DNA of 64,000 nucleotides from Corallochytrium limacisporum Hawaii (taxonomy: Eukaryota > Protista > Pluriformea). The stretch is taken from the NCBI GenBank assembly GCA_002811645.1, contig PDIP01000021.1:124001-188000 (forward strand). The letters are read 5' to 3'. This document shows, in pieces, positions 1-52,101 of this stretch. Below the pieces are notes generated by a model. That model was given only the letters and a program-made list of their open reading frames with translations, was not told where the DNA came from and did not search any database. Within the stretch, counting starts at the first letter, position 1, and every line of letters starts with the position of its first letter. Position numbers and translations under genes: made by a program.

Positions 1-326
1 GGCTCAGCCTTGCGAGCTAGCGGAGGCGACGGATTGGTTGCAGCCCCATTCTGGGGTGCCCTCGGTGGTGCACGCTTTTCCTTAGCAGACTGAATGGCCT
101 TATTAACACGGTCCTGGTAGCTCATCAGGGCGACGTTGCGCACGGCTTTCAAATCCGCTCCCGCGTTCTTTGCATCCTGAGTCTCAGCAACGGTCTTTGC
201 GCCCCAACGCAAATCCTTCTCGTCTGCTTCGTTCTCAAAATGAGGATCGGTGTCCCAGTCGTCTTCATCATGGGCAACCTTTTTGATTGCTGTCTGGCGG
301 TTGCCAGCTGCTGCACGCCATGCCAT
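1..326 (-). CDS. Cortactin/HS1-like protein, N-terminal part (runs off the window edge)
   Basis: Manual translation from ATG at 326 gives MAWRAAAGNRQTAIKKVAHDEDDWDTDPHFENEADEKDLRWGAKTV, matching the cortactin N-terminal acidic region ([25 protein letters not shown]). It is absent from the ORF track because no stop lies inside the window. Confidence 0.85.
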   Translation of the reverse strand, partial: MAWRAAAGNRQTAIKKVAHDEDDWDTDPHFENEADEKDLRWGAKTVAETQDAKNAGADLKAVRNVALMSYQDRVNKAIQSAKEKRAPPRAPQNGAATNPSPPLARKAE

Positions 327-1204
327 GGTTCTTGTCTGTTGCGTGATTTGACTCCTTCAGGTGATATGTAGGCGGTCTATGCTAACATTCACTGCTCTCC
401 AGCGTCTCCTGGGAACTTAGTACCTGAATCCGTGTCAGGGCGACGAGGGAACAGATCGCTTACAAACCACAGAGTCTCAGAATCATGACGCCAGTGGGTC
501 CCCAGAGTGTTCATTCAACCGTTCGAAAATGAACAAGCCACGAGCTGCCGCCATTCATATCCCCAGCATCGAGATCTTCAGACCAGACTGAACACACGAG
601 AAAATTGAAGATAACACCACACACACCCGTCTTGGACATCTCCCGAGGAGACCATTGGATACGGTACTCATTCTATGGTAGGCCCAAGATTGGTTTGTTT
701 GTACTTTCCAGCTGTCCTGTTTTCGTCTTCTCTCTAAATGTTGCTCACTTCCCTCTCCGGTCTACGGCAGAAGAGGTATGTTGTGTCTTGTGTCCACGGA
801 TTGCGCTGCCAATGAGCTGATCGCCCAAGAGGCAGGAGTGGACTGACCCACCCGCCGCCGCACAGAGACGGCAGGGGGAGTTGGGGCATTCGAGAATTTA
901 GAAATATGTATAAGGTACGGGGCACGCCTGCCGATCCCCCTACCAAGGACCCCCCTTTCCCCCCCCCCCCCAAGTCCGGCGAGCGATCGCTTTTCTGGCA
1001 CCAGACACGGGCCGGTCAGACCGTCCCTTCGAAATTGGGGCCACAGACCCTCCCACCCAGCCGTTTGGTACACCCGTCGTAAAGGCCGGTTGGTGGGTGA
1101 ATCAGATTTATTACCTTCATATATAATCAGTGCACTTCAAAAGACATGGCTTTGATTTACAGCTATAATTTATTCATTATAGTACGTGCTAATCCGTACG
1201 AAAA

Positions 1205-1834
1205 TCATAAGCTAATCATTCGCTCCCACCAGAGGGTTCCTAGGGCCGGGCACTCGGTGGTAATGCAGCCCCAGAGGGCATCAAGGCACTGCTGCGTACT
1301 CTTCTCAGTGACATCGCGGGTGCTTGTTGCCGCTGACAACCTCACGAAAGGTCCCTCTCCGCTCCTATCCAAATCCTCGAACGATGCTAACTGCACTTCC
1401 AACATGTCCGCCGACATGTAATGCTCCTTGCGGGCCATGAGCCGCTCCTTCAGTGTCGCCAGTCCGTTCCGGAAGTCCAGCCAAACAAAGACCACCTTTG
1501 AATCATCGTTTCCCCCGGGACGTCGCAATTGGTCCCTGTACTTCCTTTTCAGTGCAGAACAGGTGATCACCACTTCACGCTTACGTTCCACGTACAGACG
1601 CACGTCATTCTCCATCTCATCAAGCCAGGGCTGGCGGTCAGCGTCATTGAGTGGTTTTCCCGCTGCCATTTTGGCTACGTTGCCAGCACTGTGTCGTCGA
1701 TCTGCCTCAAGAAAGTCGCACTCCAGGCGCTCTGCTAACATTCTTCCTAGTGTGGTCTTACCGGAACCACAGACACCGATCACAATCCACACAAACGGCG
1801 GCCGTTCTAACTTACCCTCCAGGGTGGCGTCCAT
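1205..1834 (-). CDS. IDNK: Gluconokinase (GntK/IdnK family)
   Basis: P-loop GVCGSGKTT plus family motifs NVAKMAAGKPLNDADRQPWL, TCSALKRKYRDQL and RKEHYMSADMLEVQLASFE. Confidence 0.93.
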   Translation of the reverse strand: MDATLEGKLERPPFVWIVIGVCGSGKTTLGRMLAERLECDFLEADRRHSAGNVAKMAAGKPLNDADRQPWLDEMENDVRLYVERKREVVITCSALKRKYRDQLRRPGGNDDSKVVFVWLDFRNGLATLKERLMARKEHYMSADMLEVQLASFEDLDRSGEGPFVRLSAATSTRDVTEKSTQQCLDALWGCITTECPALGTLWWERMISL

Positions 1835-2116
1835 CCTGTAGGTTACATGTTTTCAGTGCTGTAACGATCGCCAAGTAAGGTGTGGTGGGCGACAATTCCT
1901 GCAGCCTAGTTTGCTGTTCTTTGTCCCAGGTAGCTTTATGCAAGAGAAACTATAAACATGGACCTATGCCAGTCTGGGCCACAGAAAATAGACAACAGAG
2001 TCCCTCTCCTCCGAGTGGGAGTGAGAGGGATAAGTTGAAAACGAATGATGTGACGAATGTAATGGCTTTGGTTGTGGTTTCCTTTGGTTGCGTATGTGCA
2101 CTCCTTTGTTCTGATC

Positions 2117-3364
2117 TCATGTTCGGAGCTCTCGCATGGCCCACGCTCGGTCATCCAAATCTTCTTTGACCTTTGCGTACTCTTGCACGAGTTCATCAAA
2201 GCCGAGGCCTGCGTTGGCGTAGACATCCATTGACCGTGTTAGTGTGTGCAGCGCCGCGTCTTCTTCTGCATGGAGGTGCTCCAGGACTCCAGCGATGGCG
2301 CGCAGACTCTCCGCAATTGCAGGATCAGCGCCATATGTTTCCCAACGGAGTTCTGCTAGAAGAGTGCGGTACTTAGCCACGAGCGCATCCGCCCGAGCGC
2401 GGAGGTACGCAAAGTGTGCGGCGTTTGCTGGCTTAAGTTGACCGTCGACGGCGGTAATCTTAAAACGCCGCAGCGCCAGAACCGCGCGGGCGAGATGCGC
2501 CACTTCGAGGACAGATTCGTGCTCGACAGCAGAGTGGGAACGCTGACAGTCTCGCAGAGAGCGGTGGTAGCGTTGGAGAGACCGATTTACTACGGTGGAC
2601 AAGGACCCAGTATCTATACCATCCGGGCCGTCGTTGCTCATCACGGCATCACTATGCTCTGCCTCCATTTCTGTATCATAGGTGTTGTCGTCCATGAAAA
2701 ATTCTACAAGGAGCGCATGCTGCGCTTCGATTCGCTCTGCCACCTTTCCGAGGAGTGTTCGAGTGACGTAGCTGCGGCAATGCTTTAAGGCGTTTGGATC
2801 GGTAGTGGTGACCGTAACCATCTCCGACACGGCTTCGCTGCGGAGGCCGAGTGACAGAGCCCCGATCCCTTGGCTCACACTGTCCTGTTGATTCTGTTCA
2901 TCTTCCGCTAAGCCATCCGCACTCAGAACATTACCATCTCTACCTTCCTTTCGCAAACTCTGGAACTGAGCCCACCGCTTGGCGGCCAGGACTTCCTGTG
3001 CAAGAGATGCATCCTCCGCATGGCTACCCTTCTGTTCTCGACAGTATCTGAGTTCACGGGACACTGTTGCTGCGATGATTTGCTGCTGGCAAAGGCCGTG
3101 CAGGGCCGAATCCCTCTGGCGCATGGCTTGGTTCAGTTCGGTTTTGAGCATCTTCAACTCCAGCACCTGTCGCCGGCACATTTCCCGCCAGGCTTGTATG
3201 CCGGCCTCAGATTTGAGGTCCTTTGGTATTGCCTTAGACTCATCATTGTCTCCTGACGACAGATCCAGGTTTTCAATCAATGCATCGACGGCACCAACAG
3301 GATCCAGTCCCAAGACCTGGTGCTGCCGATTGGTACAGATGCACCCTGCACTTATCTGCTCCAT
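2117..3364 (-). CDS. HAUS4: HAUS augmin-like complex subunit 4
   Basis: Coiled-coil protein whose C-terminus (YLRARADALVAKYR..ETY..Y..AGLGFDELVQEYAKVKEDLDDRAWAMREL) matches the HAUS4 pattern (DTYT..YEVLGEEFDRLVKEY..KRWALQEF). Confidence 0.75.
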   Translation of the reverse strand: MEQISAGCICTNRQHQVLGLDPVGAVDALIENLDLSSGDNDESKAIPKDLKSEAGIQAWREMCRRQVLELKMLKTELNQAMRQRDSALHGLCQQQIIAATVSRELRYCREQKGSHAEDASLAQEVLAAKRWAQFQSLRKEGRDGNVLSADGLAEDEQNQQDSVSQGIGALSLGLRSEAVSEMVTVTTTDPNALKHCRSYVTRTLLGKVAERIEAQHALLVEFFMDDNTYDTEMEAEHSDAVMSNDGPDGIDTGSLSTVVNRSLQRYHRSLRDCQRSHSAVEHESVLEVAHLARAVLALRRFKITAVDGQLKPANAAHFAYLRARADALVAKYRTLLAELRWETYGADPAIAESLRAIAGVLEHLHAEEDAALHTLTRSMDVYANAGLGFDELVQEYAKVKEDLDDRAWAMRELRT

Positions 3365-3576
3365 TCTCGACCTATTCTCCGCGGTCTAACTTATTCTTTA
3401 GATGATTTTGACTGTAGCTGTTTGATGTATTGCATGCTCTTGTTTGTTTTCTTTCCGAATCAACTCCTATTTCTACCAATTGTTGAACGTGTCACTCCAC
3501 GCCTGGATCTCCCAAAGTACCCAGCAGCTACCCCCAACGAGGGTCTCGGGACAACCAAACGCTGGGAGAAATTTCA

Positions 3577-3929: not shown

Positions 3930-5990
3930 ATGGCGTTCGCAGACAGACCGGAGCTGCGCCGGCGAGGCCAACCTATTGCAACGGGAGCTACTGCTGATGA
4001 CTCCTCTTCCGAAGGGGACGAGGTTGTTCCACTTATGCGAGGACAGCAACGCGCTTTGGATGATCGGCGCATTGTGTCAGTTGTCACGCAGAAGATCAAT
4101 GATTTGCTCAACTATCTCATTCGGGAGAATCCTTTGCTGCTGATTTTGATCTTCCGGGTTCACAACGCCTTGTTCCTACAGACAAGTTTCGTAGCGGATG
4201 AGTATTGGCAGTCATTGGAAGTCGCACACGGCCTAGTCTACGGCTGCGGACTGATGACTTGGGAATGGGAGGAAGGCTTGAGGTCCTACACGTTCCCGCT
4301 GATCTTTGCCACACTTTATCAGATCCTGCGGTTCCTTGGCTTGGACTCAGCCTGGGCGCTGATCACTTTTCCACGTATTCTCAGTGGCATTGTTTATGGC
4401 TTCGCCGATTATGCAACTATGCAGCTGACCAGGCGCTTCTTCGGTAATACCGCTGGTGCGATTGCTCTGGTGCTCTCCTTGACCAACTGGTTCGCTTTCT
4501 TTGCTGGTCCCCGGACCTTAACAAACGGCTGGGAGACAGCATTGGTTGCTCAGACGCTGGTTGTTTGGATCTGGCCAGACGAAGTTGCGCCGGGTGCTTG
4601 GCAGAGAGTGCCACACCGGGACTCTGGCTCCACGCACGCGAAGGACTCGAAGGCGACGAAGAAAACTCCATCGGAGGCGGACAACGAAGATGTATCACCA
4701 TCGCTGCGATCGACTCAGAGCCGGGGTCATTGTTCCGCGTCTGACTGGCACCTTATCACCCGCACTGCACTGGCCGCTCTGTACTGCGGCTTAGCCACCA
4801 TGCTGCGCCCCACCGCCGCCATTGTCTTGGCCGTGCTCATGATTCAGCACGCCGTCTGCAGTCCATCCAAACGTGCGGTGCTTGCCATGATCGTGCTCGG
4901 GATCCTGCCAGTGGTTGTGATTTTAGTTGCGGCTCAGGTAGCCATCGATTCGTATTTTTATGGGCATTTCCCAACCTTCACACCACTGCGCTTTTTGACT
5001 GCCAACGTTGGACACGGTGGGCTGCTAAGCAGTCGATACGGTGTCCAAGATGCGCTGTGGTACGCCTATTCCGGACTGCCCCAGATTGCACCGCTTGAGT
5101 ATCCACTCGCGATGTTTGGATTCTCACTACTCGAGTTCAGTAGTCCACAAGCCGTACTGGGGCCCGTGGCACTGGTGTGGGTGGGACTACACTCTGCCAT
5201 TCGGCACAAAGAGCAGCGCTTCGCGATGCCTCTACTACCCATAGTGAATTGTTATGCTGCTTCGGTGCTGGCCCTAGGGCTGTCACGTACGTCCCGCAGA
5301 CTAGCGCAGAGAAAAACGAAGAAAAATACGCCAGAGCCATCTCAGTCACGGACATCGGCTAACAATACGGTCCTAACGCGGTTCCCTTTCGCTTCCAAGA
5401 ACTCTGTTGCATCCTTCCTACAGCGCTACCTGACCTACATCCTGTGTCTACTCATTTCCACGAACCTGGCAATGGGTTCGTATCTCTCCTTCGTGCATCA
5501 GCGCGGAACCCTGGACGCTGTGCACTATCTCCAGGGTCTCCACGAAAGCCAGCCACGGCGCGTGAAATCGGTGCTCTATGCCATGCCATGCCACTCGGCA
5601 CCGGCGTACAGCCATCTGGGACCGACCTGCGCTATTGATCAGCGGCATTTAGATTGCTCACCTCCGCGGCAGGGTACGGACGCATGGCGAGCGCTTGTAA
5701 CCCATGGTGAAGGGTCCGGCCCGGGTCAGTTCGAGGACGAGGCAGACTGTTTTCTGCGTGAGCCTGCAGCGTGGTGGACGCGGGAGTACGGGACCTCGGG
5801 GAGTGGCAAACCGCCGCCTACTCACATCGTTTGCTTCGACGGAGTTCGGGACAGACTTGAGCAGGTTATTCGGGACAGTGGCTACGAACTTGTCCAAAGC
5901 TTCTTGCACACCCATTTTCCAGAGCCGCGCAGGGGTGGACAGGTGTTGGTGTATGAAAGGAAGCACCAACCGAAGCTGGGAACAGGATGA
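3930..5990 (+). CDS. PIGB: GPI mannosyltransferase 3 (PIG-B/Gpi10, GT22)
   Basis: Motifs FVADEYWQSLEVAH, TWEWEEGLRSY, RTLTN, HKEQRF, HQRG, MPCHS and LDCSP, with multiple TM helices. Confidence 0.95.
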   Translation: MAFADRPELRRRGQPIATGATADDSSSEGDEVVPLMRGQQRALDDRRIVSVVTQKINDLLNYLIRENPLLLILIFRVHNALFLQTSFVADEYWQSLEVAHGLVYGCGLMTWEWEEGLRSYTFPLIFATLYQILRFLGLDSAWALITFPRILSGIVYGFADYATMQLTRRFFGNTAGAIALVLSLTNWFAFFAGPRTLTNGWETALVAQTLVVWIWPDEVAPGAWQRVPHRDSGSTHAKDSKATKKTPSEADNEDVSPSLRSTQSRGHCSASDWHLITRTALAALYCGLATMLRPTAAIVLAVLMIQHAVCSPSKRAVLAMIVLGILPVVVILVAAQVAIDSYFYGHFPTFTPLRFLTANVGHGGLLSSRYGVQDALWYAYSGLPQIAPLEYPLAMFGFSLLEFSSPQAVLGPVALVWVGLHSAIRHKEQRFAMPLLPIVNCYAASVLALGLSRTSRRLAQRKTKKNTPEPSQSRTSANNTVLTRFPFASKNSVASFLQRYLTYILCLLISTNLAMGSYLSFVHQRGTLDAVHYLQGLHESQPRRVKSVLYAMPCHSAPAYSHLGPTCAIDQRHLDCSPPRQGTDAWRALVTHGEGSGPGQFEDEADCFLREPAAWWTREYGTSGSGKPPPTHIVCFDGVRDRLEQVIRDSGYELVQSFLHTHFPEPRRGGQVLVYERKHQPKLGTG

Positions 5991-34968: not shown

Positions 34969-36852
34969 TTAACGCTGCTGCATGTAGCGGTAACCGGCGT
35001 AGCCAAGAACGATACCGATCCCAAGGCCGATAGTGAGTTTGACGAAGAAGGAAGAATCGGACTCCGGGGTCGCTACCTGAAGCGAGGCCCGGCGAGGATT
35101 TTGTGCGAGGACCACAATAGGTGCAAAGATGTCGCTAGAGGCGGTCTCATCATTTTTCACGCTAATGGTTTGCGGTGAAGGCATACCGAGTTCCCGGAAG
35201 TATTCTACAGGCTGCATGATGTAGTCCTGGTTGACCGGACCGAGATCCTTTTTAGTTGCAAAAAAGATGCTCGCTTTGCCAAGAGCATCGATCTGCTCAT
35301 GGAGCTTAGCGACGTGCTCAAAGGAGTGAGGGTCATTGATGTCGTACAGGAAGCACACAACATCGCACTGCTCCATGAATTCATGATTCTTGATCAGTTC
35401 CTGGTCTTGATCGTTCTCTGCAGGAATCTCATGCAGTACCAGATAGCGTTCTGCACCATTCACACTGACGGCGTTCACAGCACTTTGTTTCTTGCCCGTA
35501 GACACGTGTTTATCATTGAAGGGTTTCTCCAGTAGAGCACGCACCATGGATGATTTCCCGCTGCCTGATGCACCAAAGAGGTAGGCCTGGAACACACTGC
35601 GAGCGGTCTTTCGCTTAGCAGCATCAACCCGCTTACTACGCAGTACTTTGATAGCAGTCTTCGCCTCCTCTTGCCCAGTGTACCCGAGGTATGCTAAGTA
35701 CTCCATTGTTGTTTCCGGTTCCAACAGCGTAGTCTTGGCCCATTGAGCGAGAAATCCAGCCAAAGTAATCCATCCTTTCTCGTTGGTCACTGTTGTGTTG
35801 GTGTAGTCAGTCCATGGATTTCCAGGAGAGGTGCTGAAGAGATTGCTCAGCTCATCGGGGCTCAATGCACCGTCACGATCCTTATCGTGGGCCATAAAGA
35901 GGTCAGTAAAAAATTGATATCCCTTGGGACTAAGTTCAATGGGCTGATCCGGTGAGGCGTGAAGCTGCGGGTAGAGGAAGTCATCCCTCAATCGCAGGTC
36001 ATCACCGTACCCAAACTTACGGAGTACAGTCCATGTGGTTTCCAGCCGTCCCCTCTGGATGAAGAGCTTGTGGAGGAAGACAAATCCTTCAACAGTGATA
36101 TGGCCGCTCTTGTTAATCCCCTCGGGAATGTTCTCTTGGATAACGTCCCGAATTCCCTGTAATTCTTTTGGCTGTAATGGCTGATTAAAGCAGCGAGTCT
36201 GGAAAATGTTCAATTCGTCATCGTTCAACGCCTCATCCTTGTCAAGATCACAGAGCTTGAAGATTCGGCACAGCGCACTACGACATTCCTCCTTGAGGAG
36301 GTGATTCGCCGCGTCATAGAGCGGTGCCGTTGGGTGCAGGACAGCCTTTTGTGCATAGTAGAACACTTCACTAATGTTCATAAGTGTCTTGGCACTGCAT
36401 TCGATGCAAGTTTCAACCTCTCGGTACTCGTTGAGAACAGGCAAAACCATTTCTTCAAGAAAGTCATCTCCGTTGTCATTCTCAGCGCGCGTATCAATCT
36501 TGTTGCCCACTAGAACGATCGAGACTAGTTCATTCCCCAGGATCCGACGAATGTACGGCAGCCAATATGTACTGACCCTGGTAAATGTGTCACTACGGCT
36601 GACATCGTAGACAATGCAAATAACATTGGCATTCTTTATGGACTCCTCAAGAGTTTCTTTATCGCTCGGACTGGACGATGTGTCCATGATATAAGTTGTC
36701 ACACGCTCTGGAGTGACCTCTGGTGGGATGGTCAATTCTTGAACAACCGGTGGTACGTCATCTTGGAACTGCTCGCGCATCAAGGATGTGATCAAGGACG
36801 ATTTCCCGACCTTGGGGTCGCCGACCAAGACTATGCGAACTGAACGTTTCAT
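34969..36852 (-). CDS. RHOT1: Mitochondrial Rho GTPase Miro/Gem1
   Basis: GTPase (GDPKVGKSS), two EF hands (DLDKDEALNDDEL, DKDRDGALSPDEL), second GTPase (GASGSGKS) and a C-terminal TM anchor. First ATG is at 36852. Confidence 0.97.
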   Translation of the reverse strand: MKRSVRIVLVGDPKVGKSSLITSLMREQFQDDVPPVVQELTIPPEVTPERVTTYIMDTSSSPSDKETLEESIKNANVICIVYDVSRSDTFTRVSTYWLPYIRRILGNELVSIVLVGNKIDTRAENDNGDDFLEEMVLPVLNEYREVETCIECSAKTLMNISEVFYYAQKAVLHPTAPLYDAANHLLKEECRSALCRIFKLCDLDKDEALNDDELNIFQTRCFNQPLQPKELQGIRDVIQENIPEGINKSGHITVEGFVFLHKLFIQRGRLETTWTVLRKFGYGDDLRLRDDFLYPQLHASPDQPIELSPKGYQFFTDLFMAHDKDRDGALSPDELSNLFSTSPGNPWTDYTNTTVTNEKGWITLAGFLAQWAKTTLLEPETTMEYLAYLGYTGQEEAKTAIKVLRSKRVDAAKRKTARSVFQAYLFGASGSGKSSMVRALLEKPFNDKHVSTGKKQSAVNAVSVNGAERYLVLHEIPAENDQDQELIKNHEFMEQCDVVCFLYDINDPHSFEHVAKLHEQIDALGKASIFFATKKDLGPVNQDYIMQPVEYFRELGMPSPQTISVKNDETASSDIFAPIVVLAQNPRRASLQVATPESDSSFFVKLTIGLGIGIVLGYAGYRYMQQR

Positions 36853-37199
36853 GTTGGACACCACAACCGATCAATCCCGCATGTTCGGTCTAGTTTTCCA
36901 TATTGCATATGATGAATAAACTCTTTAAACATAGTCATCCCCTGCATATCTAATATAGCCTTCCACCGGACCAACAAGTTTGTCTATTGAACAGTGAGAG
37001 CGGGGTTTTGCATCGGCGGGGTGTTGTTGTGCCCTGGAGACCGAGAGGAGAAGCAGGGAGCACCGCAGGTGCACACTGCCCGTGGGGAAGTTGGGAGGGA
37101 GGGAGAGTTTGGTGACGCACTGACTGGTGCAAACCACCGGGTCCCCCCTCCCGGTGTTGGTGTGTGACTGTTTTCCCTTCCCTTTGACAATGATTTTCT

Positions 37200-43930: not shown

Positions 43931-44554
43931 TTACTGGTACTCCTCATCCTCCACCTCTTCTTCCTCTTCTTCCTCCTCCAGGGCATCCTCGGGGATGCTG
44001 TAAAAGCGTAGAATTCCTTTGTTGGGATCCTTAAGAAGCAGGTATTTGCCCTCTTCGTACTTCATGCACATATCAACGATGGCACGCAGGATACCCCAGC
44101 AGTTGTTGAACTTCAAATTGATCTGTTCAGCAAACTCCTTGGGCTTCCACGACTGAGTGCCAAGAATAACATGTGACCGATTGTCATTTGGGTTGACACG
44201 GCTGACATAGCCCAGCTTTAGCTGGTCAGCTCCACTCAGAAGGGCACCAATGGTCCAGCGGGCCAGCTTGTTAGAGTTGTTCTTTAGCTCAGTGGCCAAA
44301 ACGGCACCCTTCTGAGAATCGATTTTCTGACGCCAGTCCATGCCGCCAAGCTTAGGATCGAATTCGTTCAGGGCCTTAATACTCAGGAACTGAGGCTCGC
44401 CGCCAGATCCAGGGATGAAGCCGTCAACCTCTGTGCGAGCAATCAGGTCAACACCATCACCAAGATCCCACTTTCGGTACCGATACCCAACAGAGGCCAG
44501 TTCATCGTCCTCTTCGGCAAAGATGTTGGATTCGTCAAAGCTGTGGATACCATC
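43931..44554 (-). CDS. EIF3D: Translation initiation factor eIF3 subunit D, exon 2
   Basis: [37 protein letters not shown] and LLKDPNK. Begins after acceptor CAG; the ORF-track extension to 44686 is intronic. Confidence 0.95.
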
Positions 44555-44823
44555 CTGTGTTTGAAACAGTGAAATGAAGAAAACAAAATCAAGAATGTTA
44601 GTCATCCCAATCGAGGAATTACGGAGAGGAAAGATACGAGATAGGAAGAACTGTGTCACGACTGGAGGTGAAAAGAGGTTCCACATCAGGTGTAGAAAAA
44701 TTACAAAGATTTCCGCATGGTATTATCGGTTGTCCCTATTCTACGATAACGTTCATCACCTTGGCCACCCAATACTCCCAATCACTGAACCGTTCTGCGT
44801 CTCGCTCAGTTTACAGTACTTAC
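44555..44823 (-). other. 269-nt U2-type spliceosomal intron in eIF3d
   Basis: Donor CAG|GTAAGTA, branch point TGACTAAC (44604-44597), pyrimidine tract and acceptor ACAG. Removing it joins NFSQQVLKQ to [12 protein letters not shown] in frame, colinear with eIF3d. Confidence 0.93.
44681..44764 (-). ncRNA. Intronic box C/D snoRNA, snR64/SNORD74(U74)-like
   Basis: Box C GTGATGA (44759-44753), guide ATAGGGACA (44739-44731) before D' box CCGA (44729-44726), C'-like ATGCGGA, box D CTGA (44689-44686) and a short CCA/TGG terminal stem. The guide is complementary to conserved LSU rRNA UGUCCCUAU. Confidence 0.8.
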
Positions 44824-45795
44824 CTGTTTAAGAACCTGTTGAGAAAAGTTCTGGTTGATGTAGGTAGCCTCCACAGCAAGCTTGGCGAAAGAGTTCACGC
44901 CGTCGTTCTCGTCGGTGGGTTGGTCGTAGGCGGTCTCGTTAACTGTGATATAGTCGAACATACTGTTATCACGTTTGTCAAAGAAGACCTTGTTGTCGCG
45001 GCGGCGAACTACCAGATCCCAACTGTTTACACTGCGGGGGCAAGCCATGATGGCAGCCAGAATAGCGTCTGTTGCAAAGACACGTGCAATCCCAGCGCTA
45101 GCGAGATCGCGAAGGTTGGCGTCATCACTAGTGGTGACCTTGTGGAAGACTCGATTGTATTCTCGGAGCTTGACCTCGTTCTTGGTCGTAACACGGTCGT
45201 AAGCCTTGTTGTAAACATCGATACTACCCATGCTAGTCACCTCTTCAGGCTCTGAGACATCCAGATTGAGTTTACCCAGGCGACTGAATTCGATTTCCTC
45301 GAGCATTTTCCATTCTGGTTTGACATCCACACTTGCCTCACGAGGCTTCTGCGGCTCACGCCACTTGCTACGATAGCCGCCATAGCCACGCTTTCCACCA
45401 CGATCAAGTTTCTGCATACCACGTCCACCATAACCGCGATCCTGAGCACCACCACGGCCACGACCACGACCGCGACCGCGTCCGCGGAATCGAGATCCAA
45501 ACTTGGGTGCACTGCGGGTGTCAACCAACTGGAACTCAGAGTCATCATCTGCATAAGCATAGGAGAAGACACCAGTGCCGGCTCCGTACTGTGTATGGCG
45601 ATTCCATCCCGCGCGACCACCGTACTGTGCACCGTACCAATCGGCAACCCGTCCGAGGCGGTCAGCCTTGCTGAACTGTTGGTAAGGCACATCCGCGAAG
45701 ACATCAGGCAATTTCGTGGGTCCCCATCCCTGTTCGTTTTCGGGCGTGACAGGCAGCTCAAAAATAGGCTTGCCGTCCTGATTCATACCGGGCAT
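44824..45795 (-). CDS. EIF3D: Translation initiation factor eIF3 subunit D, exon 1
   Basis: GWGP, PYQQFSKADRLGRVADW, FHKVTTSDD, ATDAIL, RSVNSWD and EATYINQNFSQQVL. First ATG is at 45795. Confidence 0.95.
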
Positions 45796-48680: not shown

Positions 48681-51600
48681 TATTAAAAATGATCTAGCTA
48701 AGAGTCTTTAGTACATTTGCTGAATGTTGTTGGTAGGGTACTTGCAGCACATGGAATGTTTTAAGTGCTAAAAATCTCAATGTTCTTGCCATGGTCAGTG
48801 ACTTCGTCGTCTCGGGTTTGGTACGCTGGTGTCAATATCAAGGATTTCCACAGATAACATTCCATTCATTGCTATTGGAGCCCAGTCATTGTTCGGGCCT
48901 TCCAACCGAATATGCTACTATCCGTGTCTCTTGACCCGTGGCCATTCCAGTACATACACAAGACCTGCCATCTCGAGCCACCTTCCCATCCCGAAATGTT
49001 CCGGGGCTGTGGTCCAGCGCTCCCACATCCACCTACCGACCGCGCAACGAACGGTAAAACCTTTGGGTGGGAACGGGGGAGACGAAGGATAGCGCAGAGA
49101 CGAATTCCTAAGGACGACCGAAACGATGTATAAGATGGCACGGGTGGGCTGGAACAGGTCCCAATAGTATGCAAATATGTTTAGAATCTAGAAATATATT
49201 TAATCTTTCAAAAAGGGGGGGGGGCTCTTTTGGCAGTTGGAGAGTTGCGATTGAATGCACACTTCATGCTCCTCACCGATGTGTGCAGAATTTTAAAACT
49301 GTTACGCGAGTGACCCCCTATACTTTCGTACCAGATACCAGGATCGGAGAGGCTCCCAGATGGAGCGATCGTGCGTGAGAAGTGGTTGTGTGTTGAATCG
49401 TTTGACCCCCACGCCCAAGCTGCCTCTGCCGATGAATGTGTTTGAGCACATGGGAGTAAGGTACTGTCCGCTGTAAGGCATTCAATTCGTTGTCCATGTA
49501 ACTCTAAGAAAGACAAAAGAGGAAGGCCAATGACGATGCACAGGAAGAAGACACAGAGTGCGATTCTGACCTCACCGGGGGACCCGTCATACTGTCCGGG
49601 TGATTGTCGAATGTGAGCTAGTTGCTTTCCCTTGCCACTCAGGTCTGAATCTATTTCCCACACATCTGGAATCGTTAGCGCCCATCCAAGCAGATCTACC
49701 TTATTGCTCACGGTGGAGCTACTGCCTCGGAATGATAGACAAAATGGAATGGTTCAATTCGAATCACGGACGGCTCCTTTCCAGACGACCCAGAACCATG
49801 TCTCCCCTGTGACTTTCGTCACGAACTGGGTGGTGGGTAGGGAAGTTCCACCAAAAGAGATGGAGCGACTGACTTCGATCGAATGCCGGGGTCGAAGGGA
49901 TATGTCTGCTGGCGTAGGAGTGACTTTCTGGAAATGAGATCTATGAATTTTATATGGGAATTCTCAGCTATACCTGGCAGCAGTCAGCCGTGTGAAAGAA
50001 TTGGAGTCTCGATGAAGCCAGTGGTTTTACCAAAAGAAAAACTCCCCAAATAGAAAGTATTAGCAAAATGGGCGCGCAGCTTTCTGAATCCCCCCGGTGA
50101 GCCACTGTTGGATCTTTTTATAACAGTTAGTTGCCCCACAGTGGTGTTACTCTTGATCATGTGCCAAGGTTTGGCCTCGGTTCCGAGTTTTGTGAAGGGC
50201 TACTGAAAGACTGCAAATCTCCGCTCTAGAGACTCTCTGTGTTGGAGCGACCCAGAACACTGGGGATGTAAGTAACGAAGTACCCTCTGTCGACGGAACA
50301 GGGAAACACCCCGCTCTAGTGAAGAGTGGAGGCACAATTTCGCTTGCCTTATGCACTGGGGAAATACCATGGAGTAGAATCAAATCACCTAAGACATAGT
50401 ATTTGGACGTTGTCGTTTGGTGTATACATGTTGCCGAGCGGGAACGGAGCCGGTACTCTACGGGTGAATTCTGGTTCCTTTTGCCCTGTATACTCAACAT
50501 GCACAAGCATCCAACTGGTCATCTGAAGGCGCGGCAGGACAATTTGTTTCTAACGTGATTTCCCTGGCATCCGCACTTTGGTCGGGGGATGCGCAGTTGC
50601 GTCTGATTGGCCACAAAATTTGTAGTGGCGACGCAATTCCAATTCCAATACCTAACAGATTTTCGCAACCCTGTCCCTAATCCTCAAAAATGCAAACTCT
50701 ATAGCATCCCTCTCTCGTCAACTCTTTGCACACTGACACATCACCACCAATGCATTGAAATCGAATTCGTGTCAGCTACAAACACAGTCTCATGTTTACA
50801 TGAGCATGCGCTACGCCGCTATCCGACCCCGCCTTGTTGAGGGTGTCAAAGGAGAGTCTCTTAGGGTGTAGAGAACTTTGACAATGCCTAAGTACCTCAG
50901 ACGAGAGGTAGACCCACCGGGTAGTACTTTACATATTGCTTTGCCGACACCAATTTTTCTTTCCTTTTCTGTTGCGTGCCAAGTACACCTAGAGATCGAA
51001 ATCAGTGCGTGACTTGCAGCAAACCCGCAATTGATCAACACCGGCAGAAGGGAGAAAAGGCACCTTAGTGATCGAAGCCTGCTCGACCATTGGAAAGCGC
51101 ATTTGATGAGCCAGATTGGTGGCGGAACGATCAGGCGTGGATGCCCTGCGGGGGGCTCAGCTCACCGATATCCGCAAAGCCAGTAACTACTGAGTGGAAT
51201 ATCTTCAGAGACACAACGCTGCTTCCCCCCCTCCTTTCCAATTATCATCCGATGTAACTCGCAATTTATGAAGAAGCTATACATGCGCGGGTTGCTCAGC
51301 TTCCCACCGGAGCCTAAGCAATCTGAGCAAGGGGAAGGTTCCTGGTCCAGGGACTGGACAGTGGTGAATCTGACCTTGTCGCTGACAAGATGACCTCCAC
51401 AGCCACCATCTTCCGTAATTCCGTCAGTGTCATGCTTTGACTGCTATTGACTACCGAGCATCACCCGTGAGGCAGCCCCGGATGCCTTCCCCCCTCCTGC
51501 GTCCCTGCTTGCGCTGCCCGCTTCCCCCCCCCCTTTTCCCTTTCCCTACCCCCCCCCCTACTTTCTCTTCTTTACCATTCCCTTTTTTGTGAGTTGCGTC

Positions 51601-52101
51601 TCTTATCACAGTCGCAACTTGGTTTCCTTGCGTTTGAGAGGGCTTCCGTTTTTCCTCTGACCCTTCTGTCTCGAATCCTGATTGCACGGCCCATACTTTG
51701 TTCCCCCCGTTCCTCTAGCGAGCCCCACGATCAAAGAAACTTGCTAGACGGAATCGCTCGCGAATTAACCGCCCCCACCGCCCGGGAAAAGAGGGGAAAC
51801 TAATATTGGGCACGGCAAAGGAATGCGTACACGGCGATGAGAAAGACTTGAGGCCTACAATGCTTCCTGAGGGAACACTGGAGTGACAATGTCTTATTGT
51901 GCTTGTGGACAGTAGAAGCTTGCAGCTTTCCATTGGATTAACAAGAGGGAGCATGTACCAAGGCACTACGTGGAAGAAGGCACAACGCGACAACACAGAG
52001 GAATCGATGGTATAAGAACAACCTTTGAAAACTTCTAGAAGGCTAATCATTATTGTGAGAACAATGGCAACCATATAGAATACATTCAATGTAAGAATGT
52101 T

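Follow-up and report, generated by a model that had tools for sequence, protein, structure and literature searches.

A probable box C/D snoRNA in the single eIF3d intron of Corallochytrium limacisporum, predicted to target a conserved LSU rRNA methylation site

The window analysed here, a stretch of 64,000 nucleotides of the Corallochytrium limacisporum Hawaii genome, has a GC content of ~0.50 and contains ~1 intron per 20 genes. The intron lies in the gene for eIF3d. This gene is on the minus strand and is seen as two open reading frames, each corresponding to one half of the protein, which are interrupted by one 269-nt intron (44555-44823). The features of the gene are listed below.

44824-45795, minus strand: eIF3d exon 1, 324 codons, ATG at 45793-45795, ending ...QQVLKQ; Pfam PF05091 (eIF-3_zeta), E=2.5e-102, profile positions 1-334
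44555-44823, minus strand: spliceosomal intron of eIF3d, 269 nt, phase 0, GTAAGT...GACTAAC...CAG
44818-44823, minus strand: 5' splice site GTAAGT
44597-44603, minus strand: branch site GACTAAC, 84 nt past box D of the snoRNA candidate and 43 nt ahead of the 3' splice site
44555-44557, minus strand: 3' splice site CAG
43931-44554, minus strand: eIF3d exon 2, 207 codons plus stop, starting DGIHSF...; Pfam PF05091, E=7.9e-88, profile positions 340-532

The two exons were searched separately, not as a joined spliced model. The Pfam eIF-3_zeta profile leaves off at position 334 and resumes at position 340 across the intron. Both exons align end to end with the eIF3d of other species and no residues (0) are missing at the junction; on this protein evidence, the intron is judged to be real. 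The closest homologues are those of the ichthyosporeans Chromosphaera, Sphaerothecum and Creolimax (49% identity). A metagenome scan with exon 2 gave no match.

Introns are scarce in this organism. The published genome comprises 24,115,307 bases in 287 sequences (GC 51.2%), with 7,535 genes and 380 introns of mean length 181 nt, median 94 nt and third quartile 178 nt; exon-junction-complex and SR proteins have been lost along with the introns (Grau-Bove et al. 2017, PMC5560861). With its 269 nt, the eIF3d intron exceeds the third quartile of this annotated set. A count of all introns in the assembly by GTAAGT...ACTAAC...CAG patterns fell below the reversed-pattern controls, and the published figure of 380 is used instead. 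The initial annotation described a single intron in about 20 genes, and this agrees with the published rate of 0.05 introns per gene and with a splice-signal scan of the window, which returned one extra, unsupported signal set in a gene-less gap. This set (GTAAGT...TCTAAC...YAG, 329 nt) is found at 50268-50596 on the plus strand, within the gap 48700-52100. C/D boxes are absent from it, Rfam gives no match at E<=1 and the fold has a z of -0.9; the signals are probably due to chance, a spliced non-coding transcript being conceivable.

Within the eIF3d intron there is a candidate box C/D snoRNA. The intron, C/D boxes and guide described previously are all present in the sequence, on the minus strand and at the same positions:

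44681-44764, minus strand: box C/D snoRNA candidate, predicted mature RNA of 84 nt, with ends placed from the stem
44760-44764 and 44681-44685, minus strand: terminal stem CCAAG / UGUGG, 4/5 pairs, one G-U
44753-44759, minus strand: box C, GUGAUGA, perfect RUGAUGA consensus
44730-44752, minus strand: first spacer ACGUUAUCGUAGAAUAGGGACAA, 23 nt, between box C and box D'
44731-44739, minus strand: D' guide AUAGGGACA, 9 nt, complementary to LSU rRNA UGUCCCUAU
44726-44729, minus strand: box D', CCGA, a CUGA variant that keeps GA; one unpaired A between guide and D'
44712-44717, minus strand: C'-like box UGCGGA, 4/6 matches to UGAUGA, 8 nt past D'
44690-44711, minus strand: second spacer, 22 nt, ending UUUUUCUACAC, ahead of box D; doubtful or orphan guide
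44686-44689, minus strand: box D, CUGA, perfect

The candidate has the hallmarks of the class, namely RUGAUGA near the 5' end, CUGA near the 3' end and a terminal stem, and extends over 74 nt from the start of box C to the end of box D. Though weak, the stem falls among those of the genome's other intronic snoRNAs, which score 2-6 of 6. Antisense elements of box C/D RNAs are at least 9-10 nt long, end 1-2 nt before D or D' and place the target at the fifth nucleotide; the D' guide has this form, with its 9 nt at the lower length limit. The internal boxes are less regular: D' keeps the GA of the consensus, and the argument for the C'-like box is its symmetric spacing alone. Degenerate internal D'/C' boxes are common in eukaryotes.

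These features bear on the main alternative to a functional snoRNA, which is that the motif is a chance C/D-like arrangement or the relic of a decaying snoRNA, giving no stable or guiding RNA, in an intron that persists on other grounds, for instance because splicing enhances or regulates eIF3d expression. The guide of 9 bp, the non-consensus D' and the degenerate C' speak for such an origin, and the fold of the region is not stabler than shuffled sequence (z +0.64). Against it stand the perfect C and D boxes and the symmetric spacers of 23 and 22 nt.

The rDNA unit of this genome (5.9 kb) is located on contig C219, minus strand, with SSU at 4150-5941 and LSU at 1-3455. Each position of the unit was tried as the partner of the fifth nucleotide upstream of D'. 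The D' guide has one in-register match in the whole unit with 9/9 Watson-Crick pairs (positions 2-10 upstream of D'); the next best has 6 pairs. The LSU stretch that the guide needs had been predicted from the intron, and the LSU rRNA of this genome contains it exactly (CCCACUGUCCCUAUCUAC, G000:C219). The predicted methylation target is the first C of UGUCCCUAU, at C219 position 1038; it is this C that pairs with position 5 upstream of D' in the unique match, as the initial annotation had deduced from the D'+5 rule.

Past a 1-nt bulge, the remainder of the 23-nt spacer pairs further through GUAG and CGUUA, for a total of 9+4+5 bp. When the spacer is compared with the 5.9-kb rDNA unit by RNAduplex, the best duplex is at the same site (-22.4 kcal/mol). 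This extended pairing is a mild plus only, because 7/150 shuffled spacers do equally well.

Counting yeast 25S rRNA from helix 69, we take the first C of UGUCCCUAU to be position 2337; fourteen neighbouring known modifications then presumably fall on the right bases. Yeast snR64 is assigned to 25S C2337 (PMC2806949), while U74/SNORD74, hosted by GAS5, is assigned to 28S C3820, for which the site-specific primer reads GATTCCCACTGTCCCTACC (PMC6856654). These two guides, Arabidopsis snoR44 and Plasmodium PFS15/16 are tabulated as guides of the homologous site (PMC2656528). The proposal that the target is the snR64 and U74/SNORD74 site is borne out by these assignments (PMC2806949, PMC6856654). 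By prediction, the eIF3d RNA directs methylation of the LSU cytidine that corresponds to yeast Cm2337 and human Cm3820. Since the target methylation is pan-eukaryotic, a guide for this site is expected in this genome.

The second spacer is less informative. In register, it forms 8 bp with LSU GUGUAGAA, or 11 bp with AGAAAAGUUAC that start only at position 5; the candidate target nucleotides are the A of GUGUAGAA and the A of UCAGAAAAG. We know of no methylation at either. The duplex energies are not above those of shuffled spacers (14/150), and UUCUAC of the second spacer can pair internally with GUAGAA of the first. A second guide had been called doubtful on account of the 8-nt match and the internal pairing, both of which are found; as neither candidate target is convincing and the energies lie within the shuffles, a functional D guide is rejected and the second spacer is regarded as orphan or vestigial.

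Box C/D frames are readily found by chance. A scanner requiring RUGAUGA, CUGA 45-140 nt further on, at least 4/6 stem pairs and 9 nt complementary to rRNA that end 0-1 nt ahead of D or of an NNGA D' is expected to return ~0.75 frames with a 9-nt in-register rRNA guide per 64 kb of simulated sequence, both strands counted. A C/D motif with a 9-nt guide is not significant alone, because about this many arise by chance in each window. The scanner returned two matches in the window, the eIF3d intron candidate and one inside the coding sequence 34969-36864. The latter (35903-36005, minus strand; 9-nt in-register LSU match, D' TTGA) is clearly spurious. This background, with a spurious frame in the same window, is a reason to consider a chance motif in the intron as well; the placement and target of the candidate reduce that chance. 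Sense placement within a 269-nt intron, out of 128,000 nt scanned, contributes a factor of ~0.002, and a target among the ~1% of rRNA positions known to be methylated contributes a factor of ~0.01; with both restrictions, the joint chance expectation is roughly 1e-5.

Nor was another guide for the conserved site found in the 24-Mb genome by box/guide patterns and the SNORD74 model, which also speaks against a chance motif or relic. The pattern TGATGA N8-40 TAGGGACA has 6 genome matches, which is the chance level, and the boxes are in register only in the eIF3d intron copy. The pattern TAGGGACA N1-3 CTGA has 3 matches, all of them coding-looking and without snoRNA boxes. Several loci were rejected as second guides for the site: L007 lacks an in-register D' or D, and L052-L054 are coding-like without snoRNA boxes, L052, the strongest with a 12-nt match, lying in a long open frame.

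Other introns of the genome also carry snoRNAs. The assembly searched contains 24,109,830 bases in 286 contigs, and the pattern GTAAGT N30-60 TGATGA N50-80 CTGA has 26 matches in it, against 12 for the reversed control. At least 8 of the 26 are convincing snoRNA introns; they are 189-302 nt long, have in-register rRNA guides of 11-15 bp, and show CTAAC 42-122 nt past box D (mostly 42-60 nt) followed by a pyrimidine-rich tail to YAG. Four of these introns are in genes or open reading frames as follows:

G000:C223:81599-81719 (L043): snoRNA intron in exportin-5; the Pfam profile continues across the intron
C33:125026-125142 (L026): snoRNA intron in a PTEN/voltage-sensor-type phosphatase
C11:221576-221714 (L025): snoRNA intron in an M16 peptidase
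C186:587734-587849 (L040): snoRNA intron in an unnamed ORF

The rRNA guides of these four snoRNAs are 12-13 bp long (11 bp for a second guide). Other snoRNA introns are flanked by short open frames and look like non-coding hosts. At two loci, second matches are located ~100-200 nt downstream of the first snoRNA intron, one SNORD33-like (L047 1793-1872, 30.5 bits in Rfam) and one SNORD49-like (L037 1800-1879, 20.6 bits); these loci resemble non-coding hosts with stacked snoRNA introns.

The eIF3d intron follows the layout of the convincing snoRNA introns: box C lies 58 nt past the 5' splice site, and CTAAC 84 nt past box D. This agreement with at least 8 other introns is a further point against chance or decay. 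The eIF3d guide, at 9 bp, is the shortest among the intronic snoRNAs found (11-15 bp in the others). Genome-wide, there is no excess of C boxes 5-29 nt from the splice site (6 versus 9 in the control); the stereotyped placement at 30-60 nt recalls the distance rule that holds for intronic snoRNAs in vertebrates. The case for the snoRNA rests on the sense placement in an intron, the pan-eukaryotic target, the failure to find a rival guide and the at least 8 similar snoRNA introns. Set against these, a chance motif or relic is an unlikely account of the candidate.

Exportin-5, the PTEN-type phosphatase and the M16 peptidase show that snoRNA hosts are not limited to translation. The earlier suggestion that such introns couple translation-factor expression to rRNA modification therefore fails as a rule.

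Rfam is of limited help at this locus. At gathering score there is no match in the window; in 601 nt searched at E<=10 there is no match to SNORD74 (RF00284) or snR64, and the only match, Afu_191, is noise (14.8 bits against a gathering score of 60). The lack of a family match is compatible with a chance motif. Rfam is insensitive here, however, and its silence on the eIF3d RNA weighs little because clear intronic snoRNAs of the same genome also fall under gathering score (at best 30-35 bits for their families). Among the intronic snoRNAs checked in the genome, the eIF3d RNA is the least family-like. The description "snR64/U74-like" thus holds for target and register, which are shared, and not for sequence homology, in view of the missing Rfam match (E<=10, 601 nt). 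Judged from its boxes and guide, the eIF3d snoRNA is very probably isofunctional with snR64 and SNORD74 without being demonstrably homologous; guides that serve one site can originate or relocate independently of one another.

The best match to the SNORD74 model genome-wide (23.3 bits) is elsewhere, at L010 1501-1586, minus strand (G000:C174:53714-53799). This is a canonical box C/D RNA (AUGAUGA, CUGA, AUGAUCA, CUGA) with a second C-box-like element ~70 nt upstream. It is rejected as a guide for the conserved site as its guides do not pair there; no rRNA stretch of at least 9 nt is complementary to it in register, and it may be an orphan snoRNA.

Guides for this site differ in genomic context between eukaryotes. 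To our knowledge, S. cerevisiae is without eIF3d. Yeast snR64 has the same target nucleotide (25S Cm2337, PMC2806949) and belongs to the same RNP class as the eIF3d RNA. In contrast to the intronic eIF3d RNA, it is independently transcribed, monocistronic and not intronic (PMC2656528); the statement in the initial annotation that it comes from a polycistron is incorrect. Human SNORD74 is, like the eIF3d RNA, an intron-released box C/D RNA for the same LSU cytidine (28S C3820 within ...CCCACUGUCCCUA..., PMC6856654). As had been stated, it comes from GAS5 and not from eIF3d (PMC6856654). GAS5 is a non-coding multi-snoRNA gene, and the human D' box is CUGA where the Corallochytrium one is CCGA; no homology between SNORD74 and the eIF3d RNA is detectable with the RF00284 model at E<=10. 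In human U74, too, the guide presumably ends ...UAGGGACA, with a single unpaired nucleotide between it and box D'.

Arabidopsis snoR44 and Plasmodium PFS15/PFS16 are likewise listed for the homologous site; PFS15/PFS16 are intronic (PMC2656528), with hosts that differ from eIF3d, and snoR44 belongs to the clustered organisation found in plants, unlike the single-intron eIF3d RNA. As these RNAs guide the homologous site, the modification is pan-eukaryotic while the genomic context of its guide moves freely.

The exon blocks of five eIF3d genes were mapped on their own loci in order to compare intron positions. In the sponge Dysidea avara, an intron of 322 nt (GTAAGT...CAG) separates ...QQVLKR from GDQKY, and in the glomeromycete Ambispora leptoticha one of 88 nt separates ...NQVVNE from PEKYD. 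Position and phase 0 are identical in the three species (VLKQ/DG in Corallochytrium, VLKR/GD in Dysidea avara and VVNE/PE in Ambispora leptoticha). With ~12 introns in the sponge gene, ~6 in the Ambispora gene and ~1,600 possible positions, coincidence is estimated at <1% for each. In Nematostella, Sphaeroforma and Cryptococcus, eIF3d has no intron at this position, the coding sequence reading through. Because the exact position and phase are common to the sponge and the glomeromycete, the eIF3d intron is old; by this comparison, it has escaped loss while all the other introns of the gene were lost. An intronless eIF3d, 49% identical to that of the window, is found in a 376-kb ENA metagenome contig from an intron-poor eukaryote (L022 1501-3057).

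Host and snoRNA are not an old combination, because the sponge and glomeromycete introns at this position are without a snoRNA (no C box and no guide). With Rfam, the eIF3d genes of Sphaeroforma, Nematostella, Cryptococcus, Dysidea and Ambispora gave no snoRNA match, and eIF3d is rejected as an old conserved snoRNA host. It follows from the sponge and the fungus that an intron can persist at this position without cargo, which is one more point for an intron kept on other grounds.

Persistence of snoRNA-bearing introns is known from intron-poor fungi (RPL7, NOG2), for which host-snoRNA coordination has been proposed (PMC8476143). As in eIF3d, the introns of RPL7 (snR59-snR39) and NOG2 (snR191) are at conserved positions and have outlasted massive intron loss (PMC8476143); the lineage, hosts and snoRNAs are different, the present case being eIF3d in a holozoan protist. 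The association in eIF3d also looks younger than the RPL7 and NOG2 cases, since two other species keep the intron position without a snoRNA. The idea that snoRNAs preserve introns has already been published for fungi and is not new here. The arrangement of a snoRNA in an intron is well known from yeasts and animals; its novelty is confined to this lineage and this host gene. No paper mentioning both Corallochytrium and snoRNAs was found in the literature.

Taken together, we consider it very probable that the eIF3d intron contains a functional box C/D snoRNA guiding the conserved Cm. Its expression, processing and methylating activity are modelled on the known pathway of intronic snoRNAs. The snoRNA would be transcribed within the eIF3d pre-mRNA, and the C/D kink-turn would recruit Snu13, Nop58, Nop56 and fibrillarin; once the intron had been spliced out and debranched, exonucleases would trim it to the protected particle. 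The spacer before D' would then pair with LSU UGUCCCUAU, and fibrillarin would 2'-O-methylate the first C (the Cm2337/Cm3820 equivalent). Fibrillarin is encoded in the genome (359 bits). Apart from the rDNA unit, weak SSU and LSU rRNA matches (179 and 217 bits) are found on contig G000:C286, which is presumably the mitochondrial genome.

A real, expressed C/D snoRNA could also have a main role other than methylation of this site, either through a lineage-specific or non-rRNA target of the second spacer or as an rRNA-folding chaperone by way of the 18-bp interrupted complementarity, the 9-nt register being incidental; the pairing of the whole first spacer with rRNA, best at this site, the two second-spacer matches in LSU and the apparent presence of orphan C/D RNAs such as L010 lend this some colour, but it is highly improbable given that the second-spacer matches are not above shuffles or on sites known to be methylated, that the D' register falls exactly on the conserved Cm and presumably matches that of U74, and that chaperone-only C/D snoRNAs are rare.

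The history of the gene may be reconstructed as follows. The ancestral eIF3d gene had roughly a dozen introns, of which only this ancient opisthokont one was kept. The snoRNA cargo is likely to be the reason for retention. The initial annotation had proposed that surviving introns persist as snoRNA delivery vehicles; the old intron position and the at least 8 other C/D introns are in favour of this, while the part that makes the snoRNA the cause of retention goes beyond these observations. A stronger version, in which the introns and spliceosome of Corallochytrium survive principally for snoRNA delivery, is rather doubtful. If it were true, snoRNA release would be the purpose of a substantial share of the ~380 introns and of non-coding multi-intron hosts outside the annotation; mobile snoRNA genes would have taken over old introns such as that of eIF3d, which would then have been protected from the reverse-transcriptase-mediated loss to which neighbouring introns fell.

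Taken alone, the eIF3d snoRNA is an ordinary annotation. With it, a lineage without snoRNA annotation gains a probable guide for a pan-eukaryotic rRNA methylation. It is also a clean example within a single gene: animal eIF3d has about a dozen introns, and the sole survivor here is ancient and now probably bears a snoRNA. Corallochytrium can be transfected. Together with the other snoRNA introns of its genome, this makes it a useful, compact system for asking if non-coding cargo protects introns, a question addressed so far mainly in fungi (PMC8476143).
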